Of a stretch of DNA of 64,000 nt, positions 6,907 through 64,000 are shown one piece after another (position 1 is the stretch's first letter; every line of letters begins with the position of its first letter). A program made the position numbers and the translations under genes. This stretch comes from Thalia democratica (Eukaryota), in assembly GCA_965202585.1 (NCBI GenBank), contig OZ241828.1:46438001-46502000 (forward strand), in the 5' to 3' direction. Below the pieces are notes generated by a model, which ran no database searches, was not told where the DNA came from, and saw nothing but the letters and a program-made list of their open reading frames with translations.

Positions 6907-6941
6907 ATTTTAGTACTTTCGTAGTAAGGCTCATCAGAAAT
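6907..6941 (-). ncRNA. Minimal hammerhead ribozyme-like motif
   Basis: Minus strand reads AUUU-CUGAUGA-GCCUUACUAC-GAAA-GUACU-A-AAAU: conserved core, 4-bp stem I, single G-C stem II pair, palindromic stem III AGUACU, triplet CUA. Confidence 0.5.
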
Positions 6942-15839: not shown

Positions 15840-16132
15840 CTAAAGTTCGTCGTCACATTTTCTAGAACGGCATCCACATTGGGTTGCGCTCATGTAAGAA
15901 ACGGTTTTTACAGAGTTATCAGGACAAGTAAGTTGCACCATTTTTATTTCAGTTTCTTGTGCGTGACAACAACTGCAAGTTCTTGTAAAGTTTCCAGACT
16001 CGAAAGAGTACACAGAACTGCTGACACAAGCTCCTTCACAAACTGACATTTCAACTGCTGTTTCGCTAGTGCACTCATCGATTGTTAACATTTCTTCGTA
16101 AGTTTTCTTCATTGCACAACTGCTTAGTTTTT
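15840..16132 (-). CDS. Terminal exon: C-terminal cystine knot (CTCK), ending KCDDEL*
   Basis: Acceptor ttttacag. Translation EKLSSCAMKK...CEGACVSS...TCSCCHAQ...TCPDNS...QCGCRSRKCDDEL*. The CxGxC, CSCC and CxC pattern matches vWF/mucin CTCK. Stop TAG at 15840-15842. Confidence 0.92.
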
Positions 16133-19100: not shown

Positions 19101-20420
19101 ATTTAAAAAAAAATATTAACCTTTTGTTAAAAATGCTGTAGTTCAATAGAATTTAAACGAACCGTTGCTCAAGTATGATGCACAAGAACCTAAGTACATA
19201 AGTTTATCAACCGAGCACGATGCGAACTGGTTGGCCATAAATTCTCCACATAATTGAATATCACCTATTGTAGCTTCCTTTAATGGCATGAATGAACGAG
19301 GAGCTCCAGAAATTAAGTTAAAGCTATCTATAGTTGCATCAGTGATAGAACCAATCTATAATAGTTTTTTTTCTTTGTAATTTTTAAGTTGCTACATGTT
19401 AAATGACAAAACTTACTTCTACTTCAGTTCCGAAGCAGGTTTCCGATGAACATGCTCCACACAAACCGGTAACTTGGTTTTGGTAGGTGTGTGGCACTGA
19501 TACAGACCAGCTGTGACCGTTTTCAGACATTGAAACTGTCACGCCGCTTGTACTTGACTTCACTGAAGTTTTAGATCTACTACTTTCTACGATGAAGTTG
19601 AATTTTCTTATTAACCCTTCCAATTCTAGTTCATGGTTTTCTCCATCAATTTCAATCTAGAAAATTTTAAATAAATTTGTAAAATAATAAAAACTAGTAG
19701 AAGCTTATAAACTTCACAAACTTTTCCGTTGTTAAAAAGCCTTAAAACGTGGTTTCCAACTTGATCATGGATAGTAATGCTTGTCAAACATACGGCTGAG
19801 TCACACTCAGCTCGTTCTACTGTAACAGCAAAGTCATTTGTTTCTACATCACTAACAAGTGTAAAAGTACCTACACGCGACGAAGATACTAGCTTGTGGT
19901 CGAACATAGTCCAGTAGGTTGAAAGACCCTTGCATACACCTTCAAATAAAGTAAAAACTTGTTATCAGCTTTTTAAATTTTAAGATTTAAACTACTTACA
20001 GCTACAAGTGTATAATGGGCAACAGCCATTTTCAGTGGTAATCAGTACGGGTTCAGAGTTATCTTTACACTTTGGCTTATGCAAAACTGGACAAATCTTT
20101 TTCTGACAGATCGGGTTTCCGTTCTTATCACAAACACATTCTGAGCAGTGGTCGTTTGAATCAGCAAAAACATCACCAGCGTGATAAACTACACCATTTT
20201 TGTCAAGGCATTGAACTTGTTCACATCTGAATAATTTAGTAAAAAATAGTAAAAACGTTAATTTAACATAAAATAGAGTAAGTGTACATATATTATGAAA
20301 ATATATTAATGTATATATACATATATATATAGAAATAACATACACAAAATAAACTTTTGCTTGGTACAGCTGTTTCTGCGTTTAATACGCGTCCTCAGCC
20401 AAGTTTTATTCAATGAAAAA

Positions 20421-20475
<55 letters not shown>

Positions 20476-23400
20476 GATATCAATGTAATGTAATAGTTAT
20501 GTTGAAATAGCAGTAAGTTATAATTTAAGTAGACTTATTTAAGAAATACTAGTCTTAGTATGGTATATTTTATTAAAAAGTTCAAAAAAACATCGGTTGG
20601 TACTAGATTTTGTCAAAAATGGTTACCTGTAAGTTGGACAGCAATCGAACTCTTCTTCTATAAGAACTTTACGTTCTCCATCTTTACAGTAAGTAGATGG
20701 ACATCTTTCCTGAGCACAAAGACACCTATATTCTGGACAACAAGCTCCATCAACATTTATAGCGACCATTTCGTAGTTTTCACCGCAAACTGGTTTTGTA
20801 CTATTGCTACACATGCTGTGGTCACATACGCATTCGTACGTAGGACAACAACCTGTCACCTTCTGAACAAGTTCATATCCATGTGCACATTGTGGTGTAT
20901 CATTTTGTGGACAATCTATAGCAGAACATTGAGTTCCACTTTCTAAGCAAGTGCACTCCTCACAATTCTCGTTCCAGACTTCTCCGATCTAGTTTAGTAA
21001 AATTTACTTAACGAACTCATTGAAATAAAAAAGAAATGTTTAAAGAATCTAGTTTAAGTCTTAAAAAATTTGTAATTGTGCTAAAAAAAAATTACAATTT
21101 TTTTTTTAATTAATGTATTATAAAGAAAATAAACTTTTTTAGTTTTTTTAATTGCATCATAGCATTACAATTTTAACTACAATAAAGAGTATTAGTGCTA
21201 AACTTTAGAAGTATAATGTTTTTACTATAAGGAAACAAAATTTTATTAGAGTAAAAATAAGTCAAATTAAATAACTATATTTAAATTGTCGTTTTTATAA
21301 TGAGATATAGTTATTAAAAAAAAAGTACTACGGGTTTTTATTTAGAGAAAAAAGAAACATAATTATTTTTACTTTTAAAAAACAAATAAATTGTCATTAC
21401 TAGAATTAAAAAGTATAAAGTGCTTTATATACTTTGTCCAACATTTAAAACTGGATAAAAGAAATTAAAAACTAACAGTTTTTGTTCCACTCTCACAAGT
21501 TTTATCAGAAGGAACACAAGATGGACAACAATCGCCAGACAAAATAGTCTGTGAATAACCTTGAGGACATGTAACGGTATCACAAATTTCTTGAGTACAT
21601 TTCGAAATACCACCAATACAAATACAATTTGTACATCCTCTGTTTTCTTTCCAAACTGAGCCACTCTAATTTTGAAAATTTTGAATTTAAAAAATTAACT
21701 TTATAGTATTGAATTGTAAAAATTAAGTCAGAAGAGTGACCATAAAAAAAAACTAACAGTATAATAATTATGTTCAGTAGTACATGGACAGTCTTCGCTT
21801 GAAACACAGTTTCTTCCGTCCCAAACTTGGCTACTAGGGCATGGGAGAGAATCTTTAATATTTATACCTGGGCATGTTTGTAAAGTGTTGTTACTAGACA
21901 AAAGTGAAGAAGATTCAATCTTTTTATCCGCAGAAATAAATGTGTATGCATTGTTATTTGACAATTGCGACACTTTTCCATTTTCGACAAGAACCGGTGT
22001 ATATCCTGCGGCATATCCGCCAGCAAATGGTTTGTCACCGGCCATTGGTTTGCCTCCTACAGCCAATCGTGCTGAGTCAAAGTCTCCGAGGTCTTTGTGA
22101 TCGTCAGCGAACACAATACCGTCGTGATCTCCGTAGTAAGAACCGTCTCCCTTGAATGCTGCTGGCATGAAACCTCCGTCGGTAACAATTGAGCTGTCAC
22201 CGTAGACTTCGTCATCTGCAGCTGGCACTCCTTGGATCACAATGGCTTGTTGAGCTGGAGCTGAATCTCCCTTGAACGGCTTGCCGCTGTCGGCAGCAAC
22301 CGGTGAGTATCCTGCGCCGTATCCGCCAGCAAATGGTCTGTCACCGGCCATTGGTTTGCCTCCTACAGCCAATCGTGCTGAGTCAAAGTCTCCGAGGTCT
22401 TTGTGATCGTCAGCGAACACAATACCGTCGTGATCTCCGTAGTAAGAACCGTCTCCCTTGAATGCTGCTGGCATGAAACCTCCGTCGGTAACAATTGAGC
22501 TGTCACCGTAGACTTCGTCATCTGCAGCTGGCACTCCTTGGATCACAATGGCTTGTTGAGCTGGTGCTGAATCTCCCTTGAACGGCTTGCCGCTGTCGGC
22601 AGCAACCGGTGAGTATCCTGCGCCGTATCCGCCAGCAAATGGTCTGTCACCGGCCATTGGTTTGCCTCCTACAGCCAATCGTGCTGAGTCAAAGTCTCCG
22701 AGGTCTTTGTGATCGTCAGCGAACACAATACCGTCGTGATCTCCGTAGTAAGAACCGTCTCCCTTGAATGCTGCTGGCAAGAAACTTCCGTCGGTAACAA
22801 TTGAGCTGTCACCGTAGACTTCGTCATCTGCAGCTGGCACTCCTTGGATCACAATGGCTTGTTGAGCTGGTGCTGAATCTCCCTTGAACGGCTTGCCGCT
22901 GTCGGCAGCAACCGGTGAGTATCCTGCGCCGTATCCGCCAGCAAATGGTCTGTCACCTGCCATTGGTTTGCCTCCTACAGCCAATCGTGATGGATGGTCG
23001 TAACCCTTGTCCTTATGGTTGTTATCGAAGATAACACCTTGATCGTCTGCAACGTATCCGGCGTTGTCGAAGAACGGAACGTCAAACTTGTTACTGTCAC
23101 TGAGAACTTGTTCGTCAGCGTAGAAAGCGTCACTCAATGCTGGAGCACCTCCAACAATAATGGCTTGTTGAGCTGGTGCTGAATCTCCCTTGAACGGCTT
23201 GCCGCTGTCGGCAGCAACCGGTGAGTATCCTGCGCCGTATCCGCCAGCAAATGGTCTGTCACCGGCCATTGGTTTGCCTCCTACAGCCAATCGTGCTGAG
23301 TCAAAGTCTCCGAGGTCTTTGTGATCGTCAGCGAACACAATACCGTCGTGATCTCCGTAGTAAGAACCGTCTCCCTTGAATGCTGCTGGCATGAAACCTC

Positions 23401-26400
23401 CGTCGGTAACAATTGAGCTGTCACCGTAGACTTCGTCATCTGCAGCTGGCACTCCTTGGATCACAATGGCTTGTTGAGCTGGAGCTGAATCTCCCTTGAA
23501 CGGCTTGCCGCTGTCGGCAGCAACCGGTGAGTATCCTGCGCCGTATCCGCCAGCAAATGGTCTGTCACCGGCCATTGGTTTGCCTCCTACAGCCAATCGT
23601 GCTGAGTCAAAGTCTCCGAGGTCTTTGTGATCGTCAGCGAACACAATACCGTCGTGATCTCCGTAGTAAGAACCGTCTCCCTTGAATGCTGCTGGCATGA
23701 AACCTCCGTCGGTAACAATTGAGCTGTCACCGTAGACTTCGTCATCTGCAGCTGGCATTCCTTGGATCACAATGGCTTGTTGAGCTGGTGCTGAATCTCC
23801 CTTGAACGGCTTGCCGCTGTCGGCAGCAACCGGTGAGTATCCTGCGCCGTATCCGCCAGCAAATGGTCTGTCACCTGCCATTGGTTTGCCTCCTACAGCC
23901 AATCGTGCTGAGTCAAAGTCTCCGAGGTCTTTGTGATCGTCAGCGAACACAATACCGTCGTGATCTCCGTAGTAAGAACCGTCTCCCTTGAATGCTGCTG
24001 GCATGAAACCTCCGTCGGTAACAATTGAGCTGTCACCGTAGACTTCGTCATCTGCAGCTGGCACTCCTTGGATCACAATGGCTTGTTGAGCTGGTGCTGA
24101 ATCTCCCTTGAACGGCTTGCCGCTGTCGGCAGCAACCGGTGAGTATCCTGCGCCGTATCCGCCAGCAAATGGTCTGTCACCTGCCATTGGTTTGCCTCCT
24201 ACAGCCAATCGTGATGGATGGTCGTAACCCTTGTCCTTGTGGTTTTTATCGAAGATAACACCTTGATCGTCTGCAACGTATCCGGCGTTGTCGAAGAACG
24301 GAACGTCGAACTTGTTACCGTCACTGAGAACTTGTTCGTCAGCGTAGAAAGCGTCACTCAATGCTGGAGCACCTCCAACAATAATGGCTTGTTGAGCTGG
24401 AGCTGAATCTCCCTTGAACGGCTTGCCGCTGTCGGCAGCAACCGGTGAGTATCCTGCGCCGTATCCGCCAGCAAATGGTCTGTCACCGGCCATTGGTTTG
24501 CCTCCTACAGCCAATCGTGCTGAGTCAAAGTCTCCGAGGTCTTTGTGATCGTCAGCGAACACAATACCGTCGTGATCTCCGTAGTAAGAACCGTCTCCCT
24601 TGAATGCTGCTGGCATGAAACCTCCGTCGGTAACAATTGAGCTGTCACCGTAGACTTCGTCATCTGCAGCTGGCACTCCTTGGATCACAATGGCTTGTTG
24701 AGCTGGTGCTGAATCTCCCTTGAACGGCTTGCCGCTGTCGGCAGCAACCGGTGAGTATCCTGCGCCGTATCCGCCAGCAAATGGTCTGTCACCTGCCATT
24801 GGTTTGCCTCCTACAGCCAATCGTGATGGATGGTCGTAACCCTTGTCCTTGTGGTTGTCATCGAAGATAACACCTTGATCGTCTGCAACGTATCCGGCGT
24901 TGTCGAAGAACGGAACGTCGAACTTGTTACCGTCACTGAGAACTTGTTCGTCAGCGTAGAAAGCGTCACTCAATGCTGGAGCACCTCCAACAATAATGGC
25001 TTGTTGAGCTGGAGCTGAATCTCCCTTGAACGGCTTGCCGCTGTCGGCAGCAACCGGTGAGTATCGTGCGCCGTATCCGCCAGCAAATGGTCTGTCACCG
25101 GCCATTGGTTTGCCTCCTACAGCCAATCGTGCTGAGTCAAAGTCTCCGAGGTCTTTGTGATCGTCAGCGAACACAATACCGTCGTGATCTCCGTAGTAAG
25201 AACCGTCTCCCTTGAATGCTGCTGGCATGAAACCTCCGTCGGTAACAATTGAGCTGTCACCGTAGACTTCGTCATCTGCAGCTGGCACTCCTTGGATCAC
25301 AATGGCTTGTTGAGCTGGTGCTGAATCTCCCTTGAACGGCTTGCCGCTGTCGGCAGCAACCGGTGAGTATCCTGCGCCGTATCCGCCAGCAAATGGTCTG
25401 TCACCTGCCATTGGTTTGCCTCCTACAGCCAATCGTGATGGATGGTCGTAACCCTTGTCCTTGTGGTTGTTATCGAAGATAACACCTTGATCGCCTGCAA
25501 CGTATCCGGCGTTGTCGAAGAACGGAACGTCGAACTTGTTACCGTCACTGAGAACTTGTTCGTCAGCGTAGAAAGCGTCACTCAATGCTGGAGCACCTCC
25601 AACAATAATGGCTTGTTGAGCTGGAGCTGAATCTCCCTTGAACGGCTTGCCGCTGTCGGCAGCAACCGGTGAGTATCGTGCGCCGTATCCGCCAGCAAAT
25701 GGTCTGTCACCGGCCATTGGTTTGCCTCCTACAGCCAATCGTGCTGAGTCAAAGTCTCCGAGGTCTTTGTGATCGTCAGCGAACACAATACCGTCGTGAT
25801 CTCCGTAGTAAGAACCGTCTCCCTTGAATGCTGCTGGCATGAAACCTCCGTCGGTAACAATTGAGCTGTCACCGTAGACTTCGTCATCTGCAGCTGGCAC
25901 TCCTTGGATCACAATGGCTTGTTGAGCTGGTGCTGAATCTCCCTTGAACGGCTTGCCGCTGTCGGCAGCAACCGGTGAGTATCCTGCGCCGTATCCGCCA
26001 GCAAATGGTCTGTCACCTGCCATTGGTTTGCCTCCTACAGCCAATCGTGATGGATGGTCGTAACCCTTGTCCTTGTGGTTGTTATCGAAGATAACACCTT
26101 GATCGTCTGCAACGTATCCGGCGTTGTCGAAGAACGGAACGTCGAACTTGTTACCGTCACTGAGAACTTGTTCGTCAGCGTAGAAAGCGTCACTCAATGC
26201 TGGAGCACCTCCAACAATAATGGCTTGTTGAGCTGGAGCTGAATCTCCCTTGAACGGCTTGCCGCTGTCGGCAGCAACCGGTGAGTATCCTGCGCCGTAT
26301 CCGCCAGCAAATGGTCTGTCACCGGCCATTGGTTTGCCTCCTACAGCCAATCGTGCTGAGTCAAAGTCTCCGAGGTCTTTGTGATCGTCAGCGAACACAA

Positions 26401-29400
26401 TACCGTCGTGATCTCCGTAGTAAGAACCGTCTCCCTTGAATGCTGCTGGCATGAAACCTCCGTCGGTAACAATTGAGCTGTCACCGTAGACTTCGTCATC
26501 TGCAGCTGGCACTCCTTGGATCACAATGGCTTGTTGAGCTGGTGCTGAATCTCCCTTGAACGGCTTGCCGCTGTCGGCAGCAACCGGTGAGTATCCTGCG
26601 CCGTATCCGCCAGCAAATGGTCTGTCACCGGCCATTGGTTTGCCTCCTACAGCCAATCGTGCTGAGTCAAAGTCTCCGAGGTCTTTGTGATCGTCAGCGA
26701 ACACAATACCGTCGTGATCTCCGTAGTAAGAACCGTCTCCCTTGAATGCTGCTGGCATGAAACCTCCGTCGGTAACAATTGAGCTGTCACCGTAGACTTC
26801 GTCATCTGCAGCTGGCACTCCTTGGATCACAATGGCTTGTTGAGCTGGTGCTGAATCTCCCTTGAACGGCTTGCCGCTGTCGGCAGCAACCGGTGAGTAT
26901 CCTGCGCCGTATCCGCCAGCAAATGGTCTGTCACCTGCCATTGGTTTGCCTCCTACAGCCAATCGTGATGGATGGTCGTAACCCTTGTCCTTGTGGTTGT
27001 TATCGAAGATAACACCTTGATCGTCTGCAACGTATCCGGCGTTGTCGAAGAACGGAACGTCGAACTTGTTACCGTCACTGAGAACTTGTTCGTCAGCGTA
27101 GAAAGCGTCACTCAATGCTGGAGCACCTCCAACAATAATGGCTTGTTGAGCTGGAGCTGAATCTCCCTTGAACGGCTTGCCGCTGTCGGCAGCAACCGGT
27201 GAGTATCCTGCGCCGTATCCGCCAGCAAATGGTCTGTCACCTGCCATTGGTTTGCCTCCTACAGCCAATCGTGCTGAGTCAAAGTCTCCGAGGTCTTTGT
27301 GATCGTCAGCGAACACAATACCGTCGTGATCTCCGTAGTAAGAACCGTCTCCCTTGAATGCTGCTGGCATGAAACCTCCGTCGGTAACAATTGAGCTGTC
27401 ACCGTAGACTTCGTCATCTGCAGCTGGCACTCCTTGGATCACAATGGCTTGTTGAGCTGGTGCTGAATCTCCCTTGAACGGCTTGCCGCTGTCGGCAGCA
27501 ACCGGTGAGTATCCTGCGCCGTATCCGCCAGCAAATGGTCTGTCACCTGCCATTGGTTTGCCTCCTACAGCCAATCGTGATGGATGGTCGTAACCCTTGT
27601 CCTTGTGGTTTTTATCGAAGATAACACCTTGATCGTCTGCAACGTATCCGGCGTTGTCTAAGAACGGAACGTCGAACTTGTTACCGTCACTGAGAACTTG
27701 TTCGTCAGCGTAGAAAGCGTCACTCAATGCTGGAGCACCTCCAACAATAATGGCTTGTTGAGCTGGAGCTGAATCTCCCTTGAACGGCTTGCCGCTGTCG
27801 GCAGCAACCGGTGAGTATCCTGCGCCGTATCCGCCAGCAAATGGTCTGTCACCGGCCATTGGTTTGCCTCCTACAGCCAATCGTGCTGAGTCAAAGTCTC
27901 CGAGGTCTTTGTGATCGTCAGCGAACACAATACCGTCGTGATCTCCGTAGTAAGAACCGTCTCCCTTGAATGCTGCTGGCATGAAACCTCCGTCGGTAAC
28001 AATTGAGCTGTCACCGTAGACTTCGTCATCTGCAGCTGGCACTCCTTGGATCACAATGGCTTGTTGAGCTGGTGCTGAATCTCCCTTGAACGGCTTGCTG
28101 CTGTCGGCAGCAACCGGTGAGTATCCTGCGCCGTATCCGCCAGCAAATGGTCTGTCACCTGCCATTGGTTTGCCTCCTACAGCCAATCGTGATGGATGGT
28201 CGTAACCCTTGTCCTTGTGGTTGTTATCGAAGATAACACCTTGATCGTCTGCAACGTATCCGGCGTTGTCGAAGAACGGAACGTCGAACTTGTTACCGTC
28301 ACTGAGAACTTGTTCGTCAGCGTAGAAAGCGTCACTCAATGCTGGAGCACCTCCAACAATAATGGCTTGTTGAGCTGGAGCTGAATCTCCCTTGAACGGC
28401 TTGCCGCTGTCGGCAGCAACCGGTGAGTATCGTGCGCCGTATCCGCCAGCAAATGGTCTGTCACCGGCCATTGGTTTGCCTCCTACAGCCAATCGTGCTG
28501 AGTCAAAGTCTCCGAGGTCTTTGTGATCGTCAGCGAACACAATACCGTCGTGATCTCCGTAGTAAGAACCGTCTCCCTTGAATGCTGCTGGCATGAAACC
28601 TCCGTCGGTAACAATTGAGCTGTCACCGTAGACTTCGTCATCTGCAGCTGGCACTCCTTGGATCACAATGGCTTGTTGAGCTGGTGCTAAATCTCCCTTG
28701 AACGGCTTGCCGCTGTCGGCAGCAACCGGTGAGTATCCTGCGCCGTATCCGCCAGCAAATGGTCTGTCACCTGCCATTGGTTTGCCTCCTACAGCCAATC
28801 GTGATGGATGGTCGTAACCCTTGTCCTTGTGGTTGTTATCGAAGATAACACCTTGATCGTCTGCAACGTATCCGGCGTTGTCGAAGAACGGAACGTCGAA
28901 CTTGTTACCGTCACTGAGAACTTGTTCGTCAGCGTAGAAAGCGTCACTCAATGCTGGAGCACCTCCAACAATAATGGCTTGTTGAGCTGGAGCTGAATCT
29001 CCCTTGAACGGCTTGCCGCTGTCGGCAGCAACCGGTGAGTATCGTGCGCCGTATCCGCCAGCAAATGGTCTGTCACCGGCCATTGGTTTGCCTCCTACAG
29101 CCAATCGTGCTGAGTCAAAGTCTCCGAGGTCTTTGTGATCGTCAGCGAACACAATACCGTCGTGATCTCCGTAGTAAGAACCGTCTCCCTTGAATGCTGC
29201 TGGCATGAAACCTCCGTCGGTAACAATTGAGCTGTCACCGTAGACTTCGTCATCTGCAGCTGGCACTCCTTGGATCACAATGGCTTGTTGAGCTGGTGCT
29301 GAATCTCCCTTGAACGGCTTGCCGCTGTCGGCAGCAACCGGTGAGTATCCTGCGCCGTATCCGCCAGCAAATGGTCTGTCACCGGCCATTGGTTTGCCTC

Positions 29401-53400: not shown

Positions 53401-56400
53401 CTTGTTCGTCAGCGTAGAAAGCGTCACTCAATGCTGGAGCACCTCCAACAATAATGGCTTGTTGAGCTAGTGCTGAATCTCCCTTGAACGGCTTGCCGCT
53501 GTCGGCAGCAACCGGTGAGTATCCTGCACCGTATCCGCCAGCAAATGGTCTGTCACCTGCCATTGGTTTGCCTCCTACAGCCAATCGTGATGGATGGTCG
53601 TAACCCTTGTCCTTGTGGTTGTTATCGAAGATAACACCTTGATCGTCTGCAACGTAGCCGGCGTTGTCGAAGAACGGAACATCGAACTTGTTACCGTCAC
53701 TGAGAACTTGTTCGTCAGCGTAGACAGCGTCACTCAATGCTGGAGCACTTCCAACAATAATGGCTTGTTGAGCTGGTGCTGAATCTCCCTTGAACGGCTT
53801 GCCGCTGTCGGCAGCAACCGGTGAGTATCCTGCGCCGTATCCGCCAGCAAATGGTCTGTCACCGGCCATTGGTTTGCCTCCTACAGCCAATCGTGCTGAG
53901 TCAAAGTCTCCGAGGTCTTTGTGATCGTCAGCGAACACAATACCGTCGTGATCTCCGTAGTAAGAACCGTCTCCCTTGAATGCTGCTGGCATGAAACCTC
54001 CGTCGGTAACAATTGAGCTGTCACCGTAGACTTCGTCATCTGCAGCTGGCACTCCTTGGATCACAATGGCTTGTTGAGCTGGTGCTGAATCTCCCTTGAA
54101 CGGCTTGCCGCTGTCGGCAGCAACCGGTGAGTATCCTGCGCCGTATCCGCCAGCAAATGGTCTGTCACCTGCCATTGGTTTGCCACCTACAGCCAATCGT
54201 GCTGAGTCAAAGTCTCCGAGGTCTTTGTGATCGTCAGCGAACACAATACCGTCGTGATCTCCGTAGTAAGAACCGTCTCCCTTGAATGCTGCTGGCATGA
54301 AACCTCCGTCGGTAACAATTGAGCTGTCACCGTAGACTTCGTCATCTGCAGCTGGCACTCCTTGGATCACAATGGCTTGTTGAGCTGGTGCTGAATCTCC
54401 CTTGAACGGCTTGCCGCTGTCGGCAGCAACCGGTGAGTATCCTGCGCCGTATCCGCCAGCAAATGGTCTGTCACCTGCCATTGGTTTGCCTCCTACAGCC
54501 AATCGTGATGGATGGTCGTAACCCTTGTCCTTGTGGTTGTTATCGAAGATAACACCTTGATCGTCTGCAACGTATCCGGCGTTGTCGAAGAACGGAACGT
54601 CGAACTTGTTACCGTCACTGAGAACTTGTTCGTCAGCGTAGAAAGCGTCACTCAATGCTGGAGCACCTCCAACAATAATGGCTTGTTGAGCTGGAGCTGA
54701 ATCTCCCTTGAACGGCTTGCCGCTGTCGGCAGCAACCGGTGAGTATCCTGCGCCGTATCCAGAAGCAAATGGTCTGTCACCGGCCATTGGTTTGCCTCCT
54801 ACAGCCAATCGTGCTGAGTCAAAGTCTCCGAGGTCTTTGTGATCGTCAGCGAACACAATACCGTCGTGATCTCCGTAGTAAGAACCGTCTCCCTTGAATG
54901 CTGCTGGCATGAAACCTCCGTCGGTAACAATTGAGCTGTCACCGTAGACTTCGTCATCTGCAGCTGGCACTCCTTGGATCACAATGGCTTGTTGAGCTGG
55001 TGCTGAATCTCCCTTGAACGGCTTGCCGCTGTCGGCAGCAACCGGTGAGTATCCTGCGCCGTATCCGCCAGCAAATGGTCTGTCACCGGCCATTGGTTTG
55101 CCTCCTACAGCCAATCGTGATGGATGGTCGTAACCCTTGTCCTTGTGGTTGTTATCGAAGATAACACCTTGATCGTCTGCAACGTAGCCGGCGTTTTCGA
55201 AGAACGGAACGTCGAACTTGTTACCGTCACTGAGAACTTGTTCGTCAGCGTAGAAAGCGTCACTCAATGCTGGAGCACCTCCAACAATAATGGCTTGTTG
55301 AGCTGGAGCTGAATCTCCCTTGAACGGCTTGCCGCTGTCGGCAGCAACCGGTGAGTATCCTGCGCCGTATCCGCCAGCAAATGGTCTGTCACCGGCCATT
55401 GGTTTGCCTCCTACAGCCAATCGTGCTGAGTCAAAGTCTCCGAGGTCTTTGTGATCGTCAGCGAACACAATACCGTCGTGATCTCCGTAGTAAGAACCGT
55501 CTCCCTTGAATGCTCCTGGCATGAAACCTCCGTCGGTAACAATTGAGCTGTCACCGTAGACTTCGTCATCTGCAGCTGGCAATCCTTGGATCACAATGGC
55601 TTGTTGAGCTGGTGCTGAATCTCCCTTGAACGGCTTGCCGCTGTCGGCAGCAACCGGTGAGTATCCTGCGCCGTATCCGCCAGCAAATGGTCTGTCACCG
55701 GCCATTGGTTTGCCTCCTACAGCCAATCGTGATGGATGGTCGTAACCCTTGTCCTTGTGGTTGTTATCGAAGATAACACCTTGATCGTCTGCAACGTATC
55801 CGGCGTTGTCGAAGAACGGAACGTCGAACTTGTTACCGTCACTGAGAACTTGTTCGTCAGCGTAGAAAGCGTCACTCAATGCTGGAGCACCTCCAACAAT
55901 AATGGCTTGTTGAGCTAGTGCTGAATCTCCCTTGAACGGCTTGCCGCTGTCGGCAGCAACCGGTGAGTATCCTGCACCGTATCCGCCAGCAAATGGTCTG
56001 TCACCTGCCATTGGTTTGCCTCCTACAGCCAATCGTGATGGATGGTCGTAACCCTTGTCCTTGTGGTTGTTATCGAAGATAACACCTTGATCGTCTGCAA
56101 CGTAGCCGGCGTTGTCGAAGAACGGAACGTCGAACTTGTTACCGTCACTGAGAACTTGTTCGTCAGCGTAGACAGCGTCACTCAATGCTGGAGCACTTCC
56201 AACAATAATGGCTTGTTGAGCTGGTGCTGAATCTCCCTTGAACGGCTTGCCACTGTCGGCAGCAACCGGTGAGTATCCTGCGCCGTATCCGCCAGCAAAT
56301 GGTCTGTCACCGGCCATTGGTTTGCCTCCTACAGCCAATCGTGCTGAGTCAAAGTCTCCGAGGTCTTTGTGATCGTCAGCGAACACAATACCGTCGTGAT

Positions 56401-59400
56401 CTCCGTAGTAAGAACCGTCTCCCTTGAATGCTGCTGGCATGAAACCTCCGTCGGTAACAATTGAGCTGTCACCGTAGACTTCGTCATCTGCAGCTGGCAC
56501 TCCTTGGATCACAATGGCTTGTTGAGCTGGTGCTGAATCTCCCTTGAACGGCTTGCCGCTGTCGGCAGCAACCGGTGAGTATCCTGCGCCGTATCCGCCA
56601 GCAAATGGTCTGTCACCTGCCATTGGTTTGCCACCTACAGCCAATCGTGCTGAGTCAAAGTCTCCGAGGTCTTTGTGATCGTCAGCGAACACAATACCGT
56701 CGTGATCTCCGTAGTAAGAACCGTCTCCCTTGAATGCTGCTGGCATGAAACCTCCGTCGGTAACAATTGAGCTGTCACCGTAGACTTCGTCATCTGCAGC
56801 TGGCACTCCTTGGATCACAATGGCTTGTTGAGCTGGTGCTGAATCTCCCTTGAACGGCTTGCCGCTGTCGGCAGCAACCGGTGAGTATCCTGCGCCGTAT
56901 CCGCCAGCAAATGGTCTGTCACCGGCCATTGGTTTGCCTCCTACAGCCAATCGTGCTGAGTCAAAGTCTCCGAGGTCTTTGTGATCGTCAGCGAACACAA
57001 TACCGTCGTGATCTCCGTAGTAAGAACCGTCTCCCTTGAATGCTGCTGGCATGAAACCTCCGTCGGTAACAATTGAGCTGTCACCGTAGACTTCGTCATC
57101 TGCAGCTGGCACTCCTTGGATCACAATGGCTTGTTGAGCTGGTGCTGAATCTCCCTTGAACGGCTTGCCGCTGTCGGCAGCAACCGGTGAGTATCCTGCG
57201 CCGTATCCGCCAGCAAATGGTCTGTCACCTGCCATTGGTTTGCCTCCTACAGCCAATCGTGATGGATGGTCGTAACCCTTGTCCTTGTGGTTGTTATCGA
57301 AGATAACACCTTGATCGTCTGCAACGTATCCGGCGTTGTCGAAGAACGGAACGTCGAACTTGTTACCGTCACTGAGAACTTGTTCGTCAGCGTAGAAAGC
57401 GTCACTCAATGCTGGAGCACCTCCAACAATAATGGCTTGTTGAGCTGGAGCTGAATCTCCCTTGAACGGCTTGCCGCTGTCGGCAGCAACCGGTGAGTAT
57501 CCTGCGCCGTATCCGCCAGCAAATGGTCTGTCACCGGCCATTGGTTTGCCTCCTACAGCCAATCGTGCTGAGTCAAAGTCTCCGAGGTCTTTGTGATCGT
57601 CAGCGAACACAATACCGTCGTGATCTCCGTAGTAAGAACCGTCTCCCTTGAATGCTCCTGGCATGAAACCTCCGTCGGTAACAATTGAGCTGTCACCGTA
57701 GACTTCGTCATCTGCAGCTGGCAATCCTTGGATCACAATGGCTTGTTGAGCTGGTGCTGAATCTCCCTTGAACGGCTTGCCGCTGTCGGCAGCAACCGGT
57801 GAGTATCCTGCGCCGTATCCGCCAGCAAATGGTCTGTCACCGGCCATTGGTTTGCCTCCTACAGCCAATCGTGATGGATGGTCGTAACCCTTGTCCTTGT
57901 GGTTGTTATCGAAGATAACACCTTGATCGTCTGCAACGTATCCGGCGTTGTCGAAGAACGGAACGTCGAACTTGTTACCGTCACTGAAAACTTGTTCGTC
58001 AGCGTAGAAAGCGTCACTCAATGCTGGAGCACCTCCAACAATAATGGCTTGTTGAGCTAGTGCTGAATCTCCCTTGAACGGCTTGCCGCTGTCGGCAGCA
58101 ACCGGTGAGTATCCTGCACCGTATCCGCCAGCAAATGGTCTGTCACCTGCCATTGGTTTGCCTCCTACAGCCAATCGTGATGGATGGTCGTAACCCTTGT
58201 CCTTGTGGTTGTTATCGAAGATAACACCTTGATCGTCTGCAACGTAGCCGGCGTTGTCGAAGAACGGAACATCGAACTTGTTACCGTCACTGAGAACTTG
58301 TTCGTCAGCGTAGACAGCGTCACTCAATGCTGGAGCACTTCCAACAATAATGGCTTGTTGAGCTGGTGCTGAATCTCCCTTGAACGGCTTGCCGCTGTCG
58401 GCAGCAACCGGTGAGTATCCTGCGCCGTATCCGCCAGCAAATGGTCTGTCACCGGCCATTGGTTTGCCTCCTACAGCCAATCGTGCTGAGTCAAAGTCTC
58501 CGAGGTCTTTGTGATCGTCAGCGAACACAATACCGTCGTGATCTCCGTAGTAAGAACCGTCTCCCTTGAATGCTGCTGGCATGAAACCTCCGTCGGTAAC
58601 AATTGAGCTGTCACCGTAGACTTCGTCATCTGCAGCTGGCACTCCTTGGATCACAATGGCTTGTTGAGCTGGTGCTGAATCTCCCTTGAACGGCTTGCCG
58701 CTGTCGGCAGCAACCGGTGAGTATCCTGCGCCGTATCCGCCAGCAAATGGTCTGTCACCTGCCATTGGTTTGCCACCTACAGCCAATCGTGCTGAGTCAA
58801 AGTCTCCGAGGTCTTTGTGATCGTCAGCGAACACAATACCGTCGTGATCTCCGTAGTAAGAACCGTCTCCCTTGAATGCTGCTGGCATGAAACCTCCGTC
58901 GGTAACAATTGAGCTGTCACCGTAGACTTCGTCATCTGCAGCTGGCACTCCTTGGATCACAATGGCTTGTTGAGCTGGTGCTGAATCTCCCTTGAACGGC
59001 TTGCCGCTGTCGGCAGCAACCGGTGAGTATCCTGCGCCGTATCCGCCAGCAAATGGTCTGTCACCGGCCATTGGTTTGCCTCCTACAGCCAATCGTGCTG
59101 AGTCAAAGTCTCCGAGGTCTTTGTGATCGTCAGCGAACACAATACCGTCGTGATCTCCGTAGTAAGAACCGTCTCCCTTGAATGCTGCTGGCATGAAACC
59201 TCCGTCGGTAACAATTGAGCTGTCACCGTAGACTTCGTCATCTGCAGCTGGCACTCCTTGGATCACAATGGCTTGTTGAGCTGGTGCTGAATCTCCCTTG
59301 AACGGCTTGCCGCTGTCGGCAGCAACCGGTGAGTATCCTGCGCCGTATCCGCCAGCAAATGGTCTGTCACCTGCCATTGGTTTGCCTCCTACAGCCAATC

Positions 59401-62400
59401 GTGATGGATGGTCGTAACCCTTGTCCTTGTGGTTGTTATCGAAGATAACACCTTGATCGTCTGCAACGTATCCGGCGTTGTCGAAGAACGGAACGTCGAA
59501 CTTGTTACCGTCACTGAGAACTTGTTCGTCAGCGTAGAAAGCGTCACTCAATGCTGGAGCACCTCCAACAATAATGGCTTGTTGAGCTGGAGCTGAATCT
59601 CCCTTGAACGGCTTGCCGCTGTCGGCAGCAACCGGTGAGTATCCTGCGCCGTATCCGCCAGCAAATGGTCTGTCACCGGCCATTGGTTTGCCTCCTACAG
59701 CCAATCGTGCTGAGTCAAAGTCTCCGAGGTCTTTGTGATCGTCAGCGAACACAATACCGTCGTGATCTCCGTAGTAAGAACCGTCTCCCTTGAATGCTGC
59801 TGGCATGAAACCTCCGTCGGTAACAATTGAGTTGTCACCGTAGATTTCGTCATCTGCAGCTGGCACTCCTTGGATCACAATGGCTTGTTGAGCTGGTGCT
59901 GAATCTCCCTTGAACGGCTTGCCGCTGTCGGCAGCAACCGGTGAGTATCCTGCGCCGTATCCGCCAGCAAATGGTCTGTCACCTGCCATTGGTTTGCCTC
60001 CTACAGCCAATCGTGATGGATGGTCGTAACCCTTGTCCTTGTGGTTGTTATCGAAGATAACACCTTGATCGTCTGCAACGTATCCGGCGTTGTCGAAGAA
60101 CGGAACGTCGAACTTGTTACCGTCACTGAGAACTTGTTCGTCAGCGTAGAAAGCGTCACTCAATGCTGGAGCACCTCCAACAATAATGGCTTGTTGAGCT
60201 GGAGCTGAATCTCCCTTGAACGGCTTGCCGCTGTCGGCAGCAACCGGTGAGTATCCTGCGCCGTATCCAGAAGCAAATGGTCTGTCACCGGCCATTGGTT
60301 TGCCTCCTACAGCCAATCGTGCTGAGTCAAAGTCTCCGAGGTCTTTGTGATCGTCAGCGAACACAATACCGTCGTGATCTCCGTAGTAAGAACCGTCTCC
60401 CTTGAATGCTGCTGGCATGAAACCTCCGTCGGTAACAATTGAGCTGTCACCGTAGACTTCGTCATCTGCAGCTGGCACTCCTTGGATCACAATGGCTTGT
60501 TGAGCTGGTGCTGAATCTCCCTTGAACGGCTTGCCGCTGTCGGCAGCAACCGGTGAGTATCCTGCGCCGTATCCGCCAGCAAATGGTCTGTCACCTGCCA
60601 TTGGTTTGCCTCCTACAGCCAATCGTGATGGATGGTCGTAACCCTTGTCCTTGTGGTTGTTATCGAAGATAACACCTTGATCGTCTGCAACGTATCCGGC
60701 GTTGTCGAAGAACGGAACGTCGAACTTGTTACCGTCACTGAGAACTTGTTCGTCAGCGTAGAAAGCGTCACTCAATGCTGGAGCACCTCCAACAATAATG
60801 GCTTGTTGAGCTGGAGCTGAATCTCCCTTAAACGGCTTGCCGCTGTCGGCAGCAACCGGTGAGTATCCTGCGCCGTATCCGCCAGCAAATGGTCTGTCAC
60901 CGGCCATTGGTTTGCCTCCTACATCCAATCGTGCTGAGTCAAAGTCTCCGAGGTCTTTGTGATCGTCAGCGAACACAATACCGTCGTGATCTCCGTAGTA
61001 AGAACCGTCTCCCTTGAATGCTGCTGGCATGAAACCTCCGTCGGTAACAATTGAGCTGTCACCGTAGACTTCGTCATCTGCAGCTGGCACTCCTTGGATC
61101 ACAATGGCTTGTTGAGCTAGTGCTGAATCTCCCTTGAACGGCTTGCCGCTGTCGGCAGCAACCGGTGAGTATCCTGCGCCGTATCCGCCAGCAAATGGTC
61201 TGTCACCTGCCATTGGTTTTCCTCCTACAGCCAATCGTGCTGAGTCAAAGTCTCCGAGGTCTTTGTGATCGTCAGCGAACACAATACCGTCGTGATCTCC
61301 GTAGTAAGAACCGTCTCCCTTGAATGCTGCTGGCATGAAACCTCCGTCGGTAACAATTGAACTGTCACCGTAGACTTCGTCATATGCAGCTGGCACTCCT
61401 TGGATCACAATGGCTTGTTGAGCTGGTGCTGAATCTCCCTTGAACGGCTTGCCGCTGTCGGCAGCAACCGGTGAGTATCCTGCGCCGTATCCGCCAGCAA
61501 ATGGTCTGTCACCGGCCATTGGTTTGCCTCCTACAGCCAATCGTGCTGAGTCAAAGTCTCCGAGGTCTTTGTGATCGTCAGCGAACACAATACTGTCGTG
61601 ATCTCCGTAGTAAGAACCGTCTCCCTTGAATGCTGCTGGCATGAAACCTCCGTCGGTAACAATTGAGCTGTCACCGTAGACTTCGTCATCTGCAGCTGGC
61701 ACTCCTTGGATCACAATGGCTTGTTGAGCTGGTGCTGAATCTCCCTTGAACGGCTTGCCGCTGTCGGCAGCAACCGGTGAGTATCCTGCGCCGTATCCGC
61801 CAGCAAATGGTCTGTCACCGGCCATTGGTTTGCCTCCTACAGCCAATCGTGCTGAGTCAAAGTCTCCGAGGTCTTTGTGATCGTCAGCGAACACAATACC
61901 GTCGTGATCTCCGTAGTAAGAACCGTCTCCCTTGAATGCTGCTGGCATGAAACCTCCGTCGGTAACAATTGAGCTGTCACCGTAGACTTCGTCATCTGCA
62001 GCTGGCACTCCTTGGATCACAATGGCTTGTTGAGCTGGTGCTGAATCTCCCTTGAACGGCTTGCCGCTGTCGGCAGCAACCGGTGAGTATCCTGCGCCGT
62101 ATCCGCCAGCAAATGGTCTGTCACCTGCCATTGGTTTGCCTCCTACAGCCAATCGTGATGGATGGTCGTAATCCTTGTCCTTGTGGTTGTTATCGAAGAT
62201 AACACCTTGATCGTCTGCAACGTATCCGGCGTTGTCGAAGAACGGAACGTCGAACTTGTTACCGTCACTGAGAACTTGTTCGTCAGCGTAGAAAGCGTCA
62301 CTCAATAATGGAGCACCTCCAACAATAATGGCTTGTTGAGCTGGAGCTGAATCTCCCTTGAACGGCTTGCCGCTGTCGGCAGCAACCGGTGAGTATCCTG

Positions 62401-64000
62401 CGCCGTATCCGCCAGCAAATGGTCTGTCACCGGCCATTGGTTTGCCTCCTACAGCCAATCGTGCTGAGTCAAAGTCTCCGAGGTCTTTGTGATCGTCAGC
62501 GAACACAATACCGTCGTGATCTCCGTAGTAAGAACCGTCTCCCTTGAATGCTGCTGGCATGAAACCTCCGTCGGTAACAATTGAGCTGTCACCGTAGACT
62601 TCGTCATCTGCAGCTGGCACTCCTTGGATCACAATGGCTTGTTGAGCTGGAGCTGAATCTCCCTTGAACGGCTTGCCGCTGTCGGCAGCAACCGGTGAGT
62701 ATCCTGCGCCGTATCCGCCAGCAAATGGTCTGTCACCGGCCATTGGTTTGCCTCCTACAGTCAATCGTGCTGAGTCAAAGTCTCCGAGGTCTTTGTGATC
62801 GTCAGCGAACACAATACCGTCGTGATCTCCGTAGTAAGAACCGTCTCCCTTGAATGCTGCTGGCATGAAACCTCCGTCGGTAACAATTGAGCTGTCACCG
62901 TAGACTTCGTCATCTGCAGCTGGCACTCCTTGGATCACAATGGCTTGTTGAGCTGGTGCTGAATCTCCCTTGAACGGCTTGCCGCTGTCGGCAGCAACCG
63001 GTGAGTATCCTGCGCCGTATCCGCCAGCAAATGGTCTGTCACCGGCCATTGGTTTGCCTCCTACAGCCAATCGTGCTGAGTCAAAGTCTCCGAGGTCTTT
63101 GTGATCGTCAGCGAACACAATACGGTCGTGATCTCCGTAGTAAGAACCGTCTCCCTTGAATGCTCCTGGCATGAAACCTCCGTCGGTAACAATTGAGCTG
63201 TCACCGTAGACTTCGTCATCTGCAGCTGGCAATCCTTGGATCACAATGGCTTGTTGAGCTGGTGCTGAATCTCCCTTGAACGGCTTGCCGCTGTCGGCAG
63301 CAACCGGTGAGTATCCTGCGCCGTATCCGCCAGCAAATGGTCTGTCACCGGCCATTGGTTTGCCTCCTACAGCCAATCGTGCTGAGTCAAAGTCTCCGAG
63401 GTCTTTGTGATCGTCAGCGAACACAATACCGTCGTGATCTCCGTAGTAAGAACCGTCTCCCTTGAATGCTGCTGGCATGAAACCTCCGTCGGTAACAATT
63501 GAGCTGTCACCGTAGACTTCGTCATCTGCAGCTGGCACTCCTTGGATCACAATGGCTTGTTGAGCTGGTGCTGAATCACCCTTGAACGGCTTGCCGCTGT
63601 CGGCAGCAACCGGTGAGTATCCTGCGCCGTATCCGCCAGCAAATGGTCTGTCACCTGCCATTGGTTTGCCTCCTACAGCCAATCGTGATGGATGGTCGTA
63701 ACCCTTGTCCTTGTGGTTGTTATCGAAGATAACACCTTGATCGTCTGCAACGTATCCGGCGTTGTCGAAGAACGGAACGTCGAACTTGTTACCGTCACTG
63801 AGAACTTGTTCGTCAGCGTAGAAAGCGTCACTCAATGCTGGAGCACCTCCAACAATAATGGCTTGTTGAGCTGGAGCTGAATCTCCCTTGAACGGCTTGC
63901 CGCTGTCGGCAGCAACCGGTGAGTATCCTGCGCCGTATCCGCCAGCAAATGGTCTGTCACCGGCCATTGGTTTGCCTCCTACAGCCAATCGTGCTGAGTC
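15840..64000 (-). CDS. Giant secreted vWF/gel-forming-mucin-family protein (5'-truncated in window; 17 exons; at least 15,275 aa) with a non-PTS Asp/Gly/Ala/Tyr-rich tandem repeat domain
   Basis: All 16 introns are GT-AG and every exon phase matches by manual translation. 14,081 codons from the giant exon plus 1,194 aa from 16 Cys-rich exons. The domain order VWC-VWD-C8-TIL-VWC(n)-CTCK is the established vWF/mucin C-terminal arrangement. Confidence 0.93.
16285..16465 (-). CDS. Exon: VWC-like module
   Basis: VGQTWAAKNDTCTSCKCEM...GCCQYCET; ttttag acceptor, gtttgt donor, phase 0 to 1. Confidence 0.88.
16539..16789 (-). CDS. Exon: VWC module
   Basis: SCSPPDMCVHNDESYKPGTTWNEDICTECSC...ACCGDCVPTTCHYDGVEHT; donor gtaagt, phase 1 to 0. 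Confidence 0.9.
16978..17255 (-). CDS. Exon: Cys-rich VWC-like repeats
   Basis: SLCPLNELKCESW...SCCTQTRCECD...CCKKSTCVC...CGCKQ; donor gttagt, phase 2 to 1. Confidence 0.88.
17327..17523 (-). CDS. Exon: Cys-rich VWC-like repeats
   Basis: KMIDQSKCCVETTQCECDSTQC...SCCPSVFEQVCTCD; donor gtaatt, phase 0 to 2. Confidence 0.88.
17716..17881 (-). CDS. Exon: Cys-rich VWC-like repeats
   Basis: CDRASCPSVEQPVCSEGEKLQVRNPGQCCVQYQCVCDSSTC...YKLK; donor gtgagt, phase 2 to 0. Confidence 0.88.
18014..18318 (-). CDS. Exon: Cys-rich VWC-like repeats
   Basis: DFKCPVFEKPICG...ECCVEFRCTC...ECCKSQVCEC...RCCNEYEC; donor gtaagt, phase 0 to 2. Confidence 0.88.
18389..18508 (-). CDS. Exon: Cys-rich VWC-like segment
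   Basis: VQMTAACDVPKTCRPNEITKTIATNTCCQVNECVPQETCK; phase 0 to 0; not in the ORF track. Confidence 0.85.
18638..18781 (-). CDS. Exon: end of TIL and start of VWC
   Basis: VLLDGVCVKPSNCPVCVDESGKGRFIGESWTKSDNLCVTSTCTNDGNI; donor gtgagt, phase 0 to 0. Confidence 0.87.
18875..19095 (-). CDS. Exon: end of C8 and TIL domain
   Basis: ATPCHALSSLANTCTTCDKVCVDWRNDELCPVECPVGTTYKACAQ...GCFCNDNM. The WR...CPxxCP...Y..C...GCxC pattern is C8-TIL. Phase 1 to 0. Confidence 0.9.
19163..19355 (-). CDS. Exon: linker and C8 domain
   Basis: IGSITDATIDSFNL...YQLCGEFMANQFASCSVDKLMYLGSCASYLSN; phase 0 to 1. Confidence 0.85.
19417..19656 (-). CDS. Exon: second half of VWD domain
   Basis: IEIDGENHELELEG...WSVSVPHTYQNQVTGLCGAC. 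The (Y/F)xxxxxGLCGxC motif is diagnostic of VWD. Donor gtaagt. Confidence 0.92.
19722..19939 (-). CDS. Exon: first half of VWD domain
   Basis: CVCKGLSTYWTMFDHKL...GTFTLV...DFAVTVERAECDSAVCLTSITI. This corresponds to the VWD start CxxxGxxHYxTFD, without GDPH. Phase 1 to 0. Confidence 0.9.
20000..20226 (-). CDS. Exon: VWC module
   Basis: CEQVQCLDKNGVVYHAGDVF...CSECVCDKNGNPICQKKICP...GCCPLYTCS; donor gtaagt, phase 2 to 1. Confidence 0.9.
20360..20403 (-). ncRNA. Hammerhead ribozyme-like motif in an intron of the giant gene (sense orientation)
   Basis: Minus strand reads CUUGG-CUGAGGA-C-GCGU(AUUAA)ACGC-A-GAAA-CAGCUG-U-A-CCAAG: 5-bp stem I, 4-bp stem II with a C.A mismatch at the closing position, palindromic stem III ACAGCUGU, GUA triplet. 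It lies between (TA)n tracts. Confidence 0.65.
20421..20468. repeat. (TA)n microsatellite
   Basis: About 48 bp of near-perfect AT dinucleotide repeat in intron 20227-20626. Confidence 0.95.
20627..20988 (-). CDS. Exon: VWC and VWC-like repeats
   Basis: IGEVWNENCEECTCLESGTQC...GCCPTYECVCDHSMC...ACCPEYRCLC...DCCPTY; phase 0 to 2. Confidence 0.9.
21477..21665 (-). CDS. Exon: VWC module
   Basis: SGSVWKENRGCTNCICIGGISKCTQEICDTVTCPQG...GDCCPSCVPSDKTCESGTKT; attag acceptor, gttagt donor, 189 nt, phase 0 to 0. The ORF track shows this region in the wrong frame. Confidence 0.92.
21758..64000 (-). CDS. Giant coding exon (at least 42,243 nt, open at window edge)
   Basis: No stop or frameshift from 64000 to 21758. 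Donor ACT|gttagt at 21757 is in phase with the next exon. The last ~110 aa are a degenerate repeat, a Ser/Asn-rich linker and CPG...CPSSQVWDGRNCVSSEDCPC. Confidence 0.92.
22064..63985 (-). repeat. Coding tandem array: 137 complete 306-bp units of two types (52 A, 85 B)
   Basis: 41,922 bp / 306 = 137. Shared 42 aa: AVGGKPMAGDRPFAGGYGAGYSPVAADSGKPFKGDSAPAQQA. A module: IIVGGAPALSDAFYADEQVLSDGNKFDVPFFDNAGYVADDQGVIFDNNHKDKGYDHPSRL. B module: IVIQGVPAADDEVYGDSSIVTDGGFMPAAFKGDGSYYGDHDGIVFADDHKDLGDFDSARL. A degenerate partial unit lies at ~21975-22063. Confidence 0.97.

Follow-up and report, generated by a model that had tools for sequence, protein, structure and literature searches.

A 59.5-kb exon of acidic tandem repeats in a putative mucin/VWF-scaffold gene of a pelagic tunicate

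Can a single coding exon of an animal gene extend over tens of kilobases without a stop codon or a frameshift, and what kind of protein would such an exon serve? The question is raised by a 64,000-nt stretch of genomic DNA from Thalia democratica (C4:46,438,001-46,502,000, in an assembly of 801.8 Mb), hereafter called the window, on whose minus strand a reading frame composed of 306-bp tandem repeats runs as far as the window edge. An earlier note, made from the letters of the window, had described this frame as one coding exon of at least 42.2 kb, free of stops and frameshifts. The next 80 kb were also examined here, and numbers above 64000 are window-equivalent positions. The exon proves to be 59,456 nt long, and it is likely to occupy the centre of a gene with a mucin/VWF scaffold and a secreted product, about 191 acidic units forming an in-frame array between two short introns.

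Extent and boundaries of the exon

The minus-strand frame is open from 21731 to 64000 (42,270 nt), in a window that contains no N, and the longest open stretch found by the same scan in the other five frames does not exceed 456 nt. Past the window edge a further 17,220 nt can be read without a stop, up to a TAA at 81221-81223, which brings the total to 59,490 nt, or 19,830 codons, with no stop, N or indel. A separate translated search of the genome with the repeat gave an open frame of 19,830 aa with 0 stops. The product of the giant exon has a computed mass of approximately 2.02 MDa, an isoelectric point of 4.3 and a net charge of approximately -1,500. The G+C content (GC) is flat at 0.53 over the array (from 22,000 onwards), compared with 0.22-0.35 in the flanks, and no 60-nt window of the array falls under 0.42, the confirmed introns of the gene lying at 0.18-0.21. 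The description given in the earlier note is borne out in all these respects: its coordinates, its 14,081 codons and its 137 units were correct, and the absence of AT-rich intron-like interruptions and of indels is upheld by the 60-nt GC scan and by the unbroken 102-residue register described below.

The 3′ end of the exon is set by RNA. Contigs of three RNA runs (X8, X5, and X12, from two studies) and of one DNA run (X1) were placed on positions 19300-22290. In the contigs of X8 and X5, and only in these, the 92-nt intron 21666-21757 is spliced out; the junction 21758/21665, which had been proposed from the sequence, has GT..AG ends, and the frames on its two sides meet in phase 0. The same contigs enter the first repeat, extending over 21758-22043 to the point at which the assembly graphs break. 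Five further GT..AG introns (20989-21476, 20227-20626, 19938-19997, 19657-19721, and 19356-19416) are spliced in all three RNA runs, the RNA contigs reaching approximately 2.5 kb past 19417, and none of the six splice joints occurs in the DNA run.

The 5′ end is a predicted one. A putative acceptor (tttacag, followed by G) would place the first base of the giant exon at 81213. The exon before it is Cys-rich and ends at 81374 ahead of GTGAGC, which gives a predicted intron of 160 nt in phase 1. Two Tara metagenome scaffolds of a relative, 62% identical in this preceding exon, carry an intron of approximately 60 nt at the identical codon position, and their next exon opens with the same Cys-rich start and continues into the same repeat family. 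Another relative, a 229-kb contig (L027) on which no repeat exon lies within 10 kb, was judged too remote and left aside. With the 3′ junction confirmed by RNA, both flanking exons joining in frame and the repeat itself protein-coding, the frame is supported as a genuine coding exon.

The acidic unit, its two forms and its relatives

Tandem Repeats Finder (TRF) reports a single array from 21992 to 64000 with a period of 306 and 137.3 copies in the window; the 4% of indels in its output is an artefact of aligning two unit types to each other. When the translation is written in lines of 102 residues, all lines from 64000 down to 22079 start in one register (DSARL or HPSRL), giving 137 units and 0 indels. 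The whole array holds approximately 191 full units and a partial unit at either end. The units are of two types, A (115-116 copies) and B (75 copies), arranged mostly in the order AB, AAB, or AAAB. Each is composed of a 58-codon variable module, which reads IVIQGVPAADDEVYGDSS.. in form A and IIVGGAPALSDAFYADEQ.. in form B, and of a 44-codon constant module, RLAVGGKPMAGDRPFAGGYGAGYSPVAADSGKPFKGDSAPAQQA.

The variable modules of A and B have equal lengths and show 81 differences in 174 nt; their non-synonymous and synonymous divergences (dN and dS) are 0.67 and 1.52, a dN/dS of 0.44, and the constant modules of the two types differ by two synonymous changes only (dS 0.06, dN 0). Because the two forms are of equal length with a dN/dS of 0.44, and their constant half differs only synonymously, their sequences indicate that A and B are old and constrained as protein, with the common half homogenised over all units. 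In-register unequal exchange and gene conversion would spread and homogenise the units, selection would clear stops and frameshifts, and a unit length divisible by three would keep the array in frame.

Within the unit types 122 distinct variants were counted, 36 synonymous and 86 non-synonymous, with 0 nonsense changes and 0 indels. Under a neutral spectrum (26, 70.5, and 3.5%) 4.3 stops would be expected, against none observed (P ~0.013). The strong selection on frame and unit length that had been suggested earlier can be retained for these two properties, and it does not extend to the inside of the array, where the same 36 synonymous and 86 non-synonymous variants are near neutral. Fifty of the 122 variants are common to more than one unit, and their carriers cluster, with a mean gap of 18 units compared with 45 after permutation (0 of 1000 permutations as low), which is the pattern expected from a local duplication history.

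The GC at the three codon positions of the array is 0.67, 0.47, and 0.45, and is mostly due to Gly, Ala, Asp, Pro, and Val codons together with a preference for TAC, GAC, TTC, and AAG. Two-fold codons lean to C or G endings (TAC 100%, GAC 74%, TTC 74%, AAG 70%). The encoded chain is composed of Gly (16.3%), Ala (14.6%), Asp (13.9%), Pro (7.2%), Ser (6.5%), and Thr (0.6%) among other residues. Ser and Thr together amount to 7.1% of the array, or six to eight per 102-residue unit, Phe and Tyr to 11% of the repeat; the unit is free of Cys, one Cys occurring in the whole array, and N-X-S/T sequons are absent. A Pfam scan of three repeat units returned sub-threshold noise only, and an ESM Atlas feature search with two units returned no usable match.

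HMMER, run exhaustively against 1.84 billion representatives, matched only six proteins. The Tara transcript catalogue contributes three of them and ENA assemblies two, all five being short fragments of marine origin; the remaining one, P0006 (26% identity), resembles a repeat protein of unrelated kind and was rejected. One of the marine fragments is 94% identical and has a tail like that of the giant exon, and others are 38-49% identical. A transcript-derived relative of approximately 47% identity retains the 102-aa period, and P0009 carries RLAVG at an exact spacing of 102 residues and likewise has two unit forms. The positions conserved across the relatives are ..Y.D....D....PF...GY..DD.G[IV]V[FY].D..KD.GD...RLAVG..P.A.D.P.A.GY...Y.P. 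Because the marine relatives carry these positions and the 102-residue spacing, unit length and motif appear to have been kept across divergent species, and this comparison provides what can be considered the best evidence that the array is translated. A similar tail closes the Tara transcript-derived protein P0001. In P0011, a close relative from the Tara transcript catalogue, an A-type module leaps from ..AAFKGD to SAPAQQA, skipping the 63 residues between the FKGD motifs of the unit; either the unit exists in a shorter variant or the assembled sequence is chimeric. Elsewhere in the genome the 102-aa unit is represented by one fragment only (C5:14,484,083-14,484,244), of 55 aa and 87% identical to the unit, with one internal TAA, which is probably a dead copy.

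Transcripts, copy number and alternative explanations

The repeat is present in RNA. Its words occur in 20 runs from 11 studies, and at least 12 of these are recorded as RNA and contain 35-60% of the 31-mers sampled from ten units, a share equal to that in DNA runs of the organism. The runs with repeat words are marine plankton metagenomes and metatranscriptomes.

Several observations weigh against the interpretation of the locus as a fully expressed giant exon. The 5′ junction and the 5′ exons have no RNA support; a search of transcript-derived proteins with the 5′ unique part of the exon matched repeats only, and the relatives found with the preceding exon as query were genomic, none of them from RNA. 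The candidate first exon, with a candidate signal peptide (ATG at window-equivalent 93723, MSAKTSSLLSILTLLLPLWF..), is likewise based on sequence and without RNA support. Recent variation within the array is nearly neutral, apart from the purging of disruptive changes. AlphaFold2 gave a predicted local distance difference test score (pLDDT) of 34 both for three units alone and for two units with a 9-row alignment, and the default reading of this absent fold is that the repeat is probably disordered. In the three RNA runs the depth of repeat unitigs relative to the unique 3′ exons is 0.7-1.9x for A and 0.4-1.0x for B, a ratio for which even coverage of a full-length transcript would give approximately 100. 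Because the RNA ratio is 0.4-1.9x against 41-82x in DNA, presence of the entire array is not demonstrated for most of the RNA molecules sequenced. The DNA depth, too, is approximately 25% under the assembled copy number (0.72-0.77 of that expected from the 31-mer multiplicity of the assembly, in five unitigs), which could reflect a second, shorter allele, biased coverage, or an assembly that is modestly over-expanded, by a quarter at most.

The alternative best served by these data is that the exon is real but that mature transcripts, or the other allele or most individuals, carry far fewer units, through splicing inside the array or length polymorphism; the 59-kb form would then stand at the long end of a range of array lengths. 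Both the RNA repeat depth of approximately 1x the unique 3′ exons, compared with approximately 80x in DNA, and the DNA depth of 0.72-0.77 of the assembled multiplicity would fit it, and there is precedent in the central exons of human mucins, whose length varies several-fold between alleles (PMC13345508). Two of the three RNA runs, however, are oligo-dT libraries, for which 3′ bias is expected (the record of the third says only cDNA), and the depth of contigs is not a good measure. The transcript would exceed 60 kb, with 3.8 kb separating its 3′ end from the array, and a drop in depth beyond 4 kb from the poly(A) is to be expected in such libraries. With a 3′ decay length of 1.5-2 kb the A ratio can be reproduced; the same model, however, predicts a B/A ratio of 0.29-0.35, against 0.42-0.73 observed. 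The observed values are closer to that of the array as a whole than to that of its last few units, and suggest thin coverage from across the whole array. Splicing inside the array finds no counterpart in the examined repeat segment, where no RNA-only joint is a splice. One joint with GT..AG-like ends, 22071/22241, was considered as an internal splice and rejected: its contig carries a B-type module, and the DNA has B-type loose ends at both places. The unit contains neither donors of the GTAAGT/GTTAGT type nor AT-rich intron-like stretches, and the frame is intact throughout. Far shorter transcripts or alleles are accordingly held to be rather improbable.

Less probable still, and given little credence here, is an array substantially over-expanded or misjoined by the assembler, with a much shorter true exon. 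Assemblers are well known to make errors in long tandem arrays, and the depth, 25% below expectation, comes from one DNA run (X1), possibly from the assembled sample itself. In that run, however, the single-copy flanks have a depth of 78-89 and the repeat unitigs one of 6,470-6,970 (type A) and 3,455 (type B), that is, 82x and 41x the single-copy depth, which requires well over 100 units and supports approximately 140 units per haploid genome on average. The copy-number check by read depth that the earlier note had proposed therefore accounts for approximately 75% of the assembled copies, the remaining 25% or so being missing from the depth. The longest exact repeat inside the array is 1,527 bp, and the best self-match of 15 units is 99.5% identical, with no large duplicated block and no multi-unit block above that identity. 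Common variants are clustered locally, as in a real history, and a second gene approximately 1 Mb away has giant exons of the same kind. Gross over-expansion is unlikely because every 2-kb window of the array is unique.

That the array is a non-coding satellite or a decaying pseudogene, open by chance after recent amplification of one open unit, is barely credible: the 191 near-identical open copies do reflect one 306-bp unit with few mutations, and the variants within the array are nearly neutral, but the array is spliced in frame to 3′ coding exons in poly(A) RNA, the two old unit types are equal in length with a dN/dS of 0.44, divergent relatives keep the motifs and the 102-aa period in transcripts, and two-fold codons prefer C or G endings.

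The gene, its putative product and known systems

The coordinates of the exon and of the features downstream of it are collected in Table 1. Upstream, Pfam recognises in open-frame pieces Sushi domains, followed by VWD, C8, and TIL three times together with a VWF E-like/VWC module, and a phmmer search with the upstream C8 piece found FCGBP, VWF, MUC2, MUC5B, and MUC5AC as solved relatives. The best solved relative of the C-terminal cystine knot is the VWF CTCK (9qrv, E 9.4e-12; 4nt5, E 6.5e-11), and MUC2 is matched as well. Judged by these domains, the gene belongs to the gel-forming-mucin/VWF scaffold. Its putative product would begin with Sushi and three VWD-C8-TIL sets, continue with the acidic exon as its centre, and end with VWC, a fourth VWD-C8-TIL, VWC, and the cystine knot. 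The full protein would have some 23,000 residues, by a rough sum. The confirmed introns of the gene measure 60-490 nt, with 60 and 65 nt for the two between the three exons of 19417-20226. Within the 400-nt intron lies an (AT)n microsatellite of 60 nt (20421-20480), at which the contigs of all runs break. The C-terminus, ..RKCDDEL (15843-15860), resembles a KDEL-type retrieval signal of the endoplasmic reticulum without matching it, which is odd in a secreted polymer.

Table 1. Features of the giant-exon locus, in window numbering (values above 64000 are window-equivalent)
Feature	Position	Strand	Basis and remarks
Giant coding exon, whole	81213..21758 = C4:46,459,758-46,519,213	minus	59,456 nt, 19,818 full codons
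Giant exon, part within the window	21758..64000	minus	Open frame; 3′ end set by spliced RNA contigs, 5′ acceptor predicted
Tandem array of 306-bp (102-aa) units	21992..64000 in window; 191 full units 80524-22079	minus	TRF and translation
Unique 3′ tail of giant exon	21758..21991	minus	Closes the repeats and opens a Cys-rich module (..CPGINIKDSLPCPSSQVWDGRNCVSSEDCPC..); RNA contigs cover 21758-22043
Intron, 92 nt	21666..21757	minus	GTTAGT..TTAG, GC 0.18; directly 3′ of giant exon; RNA joint in X8 and X5
Exon, Cys-rich VWC-like segment	21477..21665	minus	RNA contigs; phase 0 to giant exon
Intron, 488 nt	20989..21476	minus	RNA joint in X8, X5, and X12
Exon with VWC domain	20627..20988	minus	RNA contigs; Pfam VWC, E 5.9e-5
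Intron, 400 nt	20227..20626	minus	RNA joint; contains (AT)n microsatellite (TRF)
Three exons	19998-20226, 19722-19937, 19417-19656	minus	VWC2L-like module and fourth VWD; RNA joints; Pfam VWC2L_1st, VWD
Further C-terminal exons (approximate limits)	16244..19355	minus	C8/TIL, CxxC-rich modules, VWC; open-frame pieces, Pfam C8, TIL, VWC
Last coding exon	15843..16160	minus	C-terminal cystine knot, Pfam Cys_knot, E 5.3e-9; ends ..RKCDDEL and stop

From this layout, and by analogy with VWF and MUC2, we infer that the cystine knot would join the chains tail to tail into dimers and the D3 assembly would link them head to head into disulfide multimers. The product would be very long polyanionic polymers with a spacer of approximately 19,500 acidic, flexible residues, forming an extracellular gel or fibre. 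An Asp-rich chain in place of glycans would provide charge, hydration, and cation binding; in seawater it should bind Ca2+ and Mg2+ and hold water, as glycans do in mucins, and the 11% of Phe and Tyr could add stickiness. The function we prefer, although tentatively and by analogy, is a structural one, either in the mucous filter used for feeding or in the house, because tunicates feed with mucous nets made by the endostyle (PMC6109156) and larvacean filter-houses contain VWD proteins, the oikosin 30 family (PMC3390340).

Pairing of splice sites across short introns, known as intron definition, is an accepted mechanism in genomes with short introns. The giant exon may be able to reach its length because it is flanked by short AT-rich introns, the splice sites on either side being paired across the intron, so that exon length would be tolerated; the 60-490-nt introns of the gene fit this as the reason why exon length is unconstrained. 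How the spliceosome would define such an exon had been called an open question, which is an overstatement, as the flanking introns are short (92 nt confirmed, 160 nt predicted) and constitute the standard setting for intron definition. The same mechanism has been invoked for Chironomus, an AT-rich genome with many short introns (PMC4192438).

Among mucins, a giant central exon of repeats is the usual arrangement. The gel-forming mucins (MUC2, MUC5AC/B, MUC6, and MUC19) resemble the present gene in having D1-D2-D′D3, one huge central repeat exon, D4, VWC, and a cystine knot, and mucins with one giant central tandem-repeat exon (MUC4, MUC12, and MUC16) share this exon architecture, their array evolving as a variable tandem repeat. 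The gene has the N-terminal VWD-C8-TIL, the C-terminal D4, VWC, and cystine knot, and the single giant repeat exon of gel-forming mucins, and it lacks, judged by composition, their central domain rich in Pro, Thr, and Ser (PTS): Ser and Thr make up 7.1% and Pro 7.2%, N-sequons are absent, and the negative charge would come from Asp instead of glycans. It further differs from mucins in its long 102-aa unit with two alternating forms and in its N-terminal Sushi domains. VWF and Ci-GFM1 of Ciona are built on the same polymer scaffold, and the cystine knot found here is nearest to the VWF CTCK; by E-value this dimerisation domain is present. Members of the VWF/mucin family differ by the insert between D3 and D4, where A domains, PTS, or chitin-binding domains may stand (PMC6109156). 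The present gene showed neither a VWA nor a chitin-binding domain, with no VWA match in any Pfam scan of its pieces, and in contrast to VWF the D3-D4 interval is occupied by an orphan repeat of approximately 19,500 residues and short Cys-rich modules. What is new is that the inserted module is an acidic orphan repeat, so far present only in marine plankton sequences, in a gene that departs from mucins in its PTS content.

With regard to size, the yardsticks used in the earlier note (TTN, ~17 kb, and MUC16, ~22 kb) are outdated by a 2026 long-read study in which human MUC12 alleles encode 4,677-23,080 aa and the central exon is called the largest in the human genome (PMC13345508). The longest of these alleles (23,080 aa) are in the same size class as the protein described here. 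The Balbiani ring genes of Chironomus (BR1, BR2.1, BR2.2, and BR6) are approximately 40 kb long with only four introns, all short, and their giant tandem-repeat exons encode secreted structural proteins of approximately 1 MDa (PMC4192438). They have an unrelated scaffold and repeat, an insect host, and arrays that are incompletely assembled in that study, and the likeness is one of gene architecture only. The placing of the exon among the largest coding exons can be kept as regards its extreme size, but there is precedent in MUC12 (PMC13345508) and in the Balbiani ring genes (PMC4192438). The larvacean oikosin 30 family, tunicate extracellular VWD proteins of the filter-house, can be likened to the present protein by description only, and no giant repeat is noted for it in the available part of the source (PMC3390340).

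As a gap-free animal coding exon of 59.5 kb with one RNA-confirmed junction, the locus bears on the upper range of exon size and on the upkeep of arrays outside mammals. It also adds what would be a third kind of central module on the mucin/VWF scaffold, an acidic and probably disordered repeat that is neither PTS nor A domains. The mucous filters of pelagic tunicates process a large share of ocean particles, and to our knowledge the proteins of these filters are largely uncharacterised; the gene and its paralogue, described below, are concrete candidates. It is doubtful, though conceivable, that the main filter or house polymer of pelagic tunicates is a protein polyanion on the mucin/VWF scaffold, above 2 MDa and poor in glycans, which would owe its charge and extension to the orphan Asp/Gly/Ala/aromatic repeat in place of O-glycans. 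It would constitute a new class of gel- or fibre-forming protein, encoded by a small gene family with exons of 59.5, 50.8, and 27.5 kb fully transcribed and translated.

The paralogous mucin-scaffold gene (C4:45,436,748-45,518,387, plus strand; L011-L019) lies 0.92-1.0 Mb upstream on the opposite strand. Two giant exons are predicted in it, 27,536 and 50,839 nt long and composed of 333-bp (111-aa) units rich in Gly, Asp, and Tyr, in approximately 80 and 147 copies. The two exons are parted by a 3,265-nt intron (22.5% GC, GTATGT..TAG), the removal of which restores the unit frame. The 102-aa and 111-aa units share no significant similarity (z 1.2 and -0.4), and homology of the two repeats is not claimed.

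The host is, to judge by its mitochondrial sequence, a pelagic tunicate. On the mitochondrial contig C1833 (L024), COX1 has AGA/AGG at invariant Gly positions (FDPxGGGDP, FFGHPEV, LPGFG, HLAGVSS, and IPTGIK) and reads AGA/AGG as Gly and TGA as Trp, which is the ascidian/tunicate mitochondrial code; the assignment is made because of this code and of the matching runs from marine plankton. COX1-like pieces with many stops, at C4:56.84-56.94 Mb and on C757, look like nuclear copies of mitochondrial DNA.

Two further open frames on the minus strand border the gene. Just 3′ of it, at 13693-14148, lies a frame of 152 aa with a ..NNCVEGWHRRFKAV.. motif and no Pfam match, possibly a transposase remnant. 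Upstream, at 107211-108884 (L006:3211-4884), there is a 558-aa frame rich in Ser, Pro, and Arg, also with no Pfam match, which probably belongs to a neighbouring gene.

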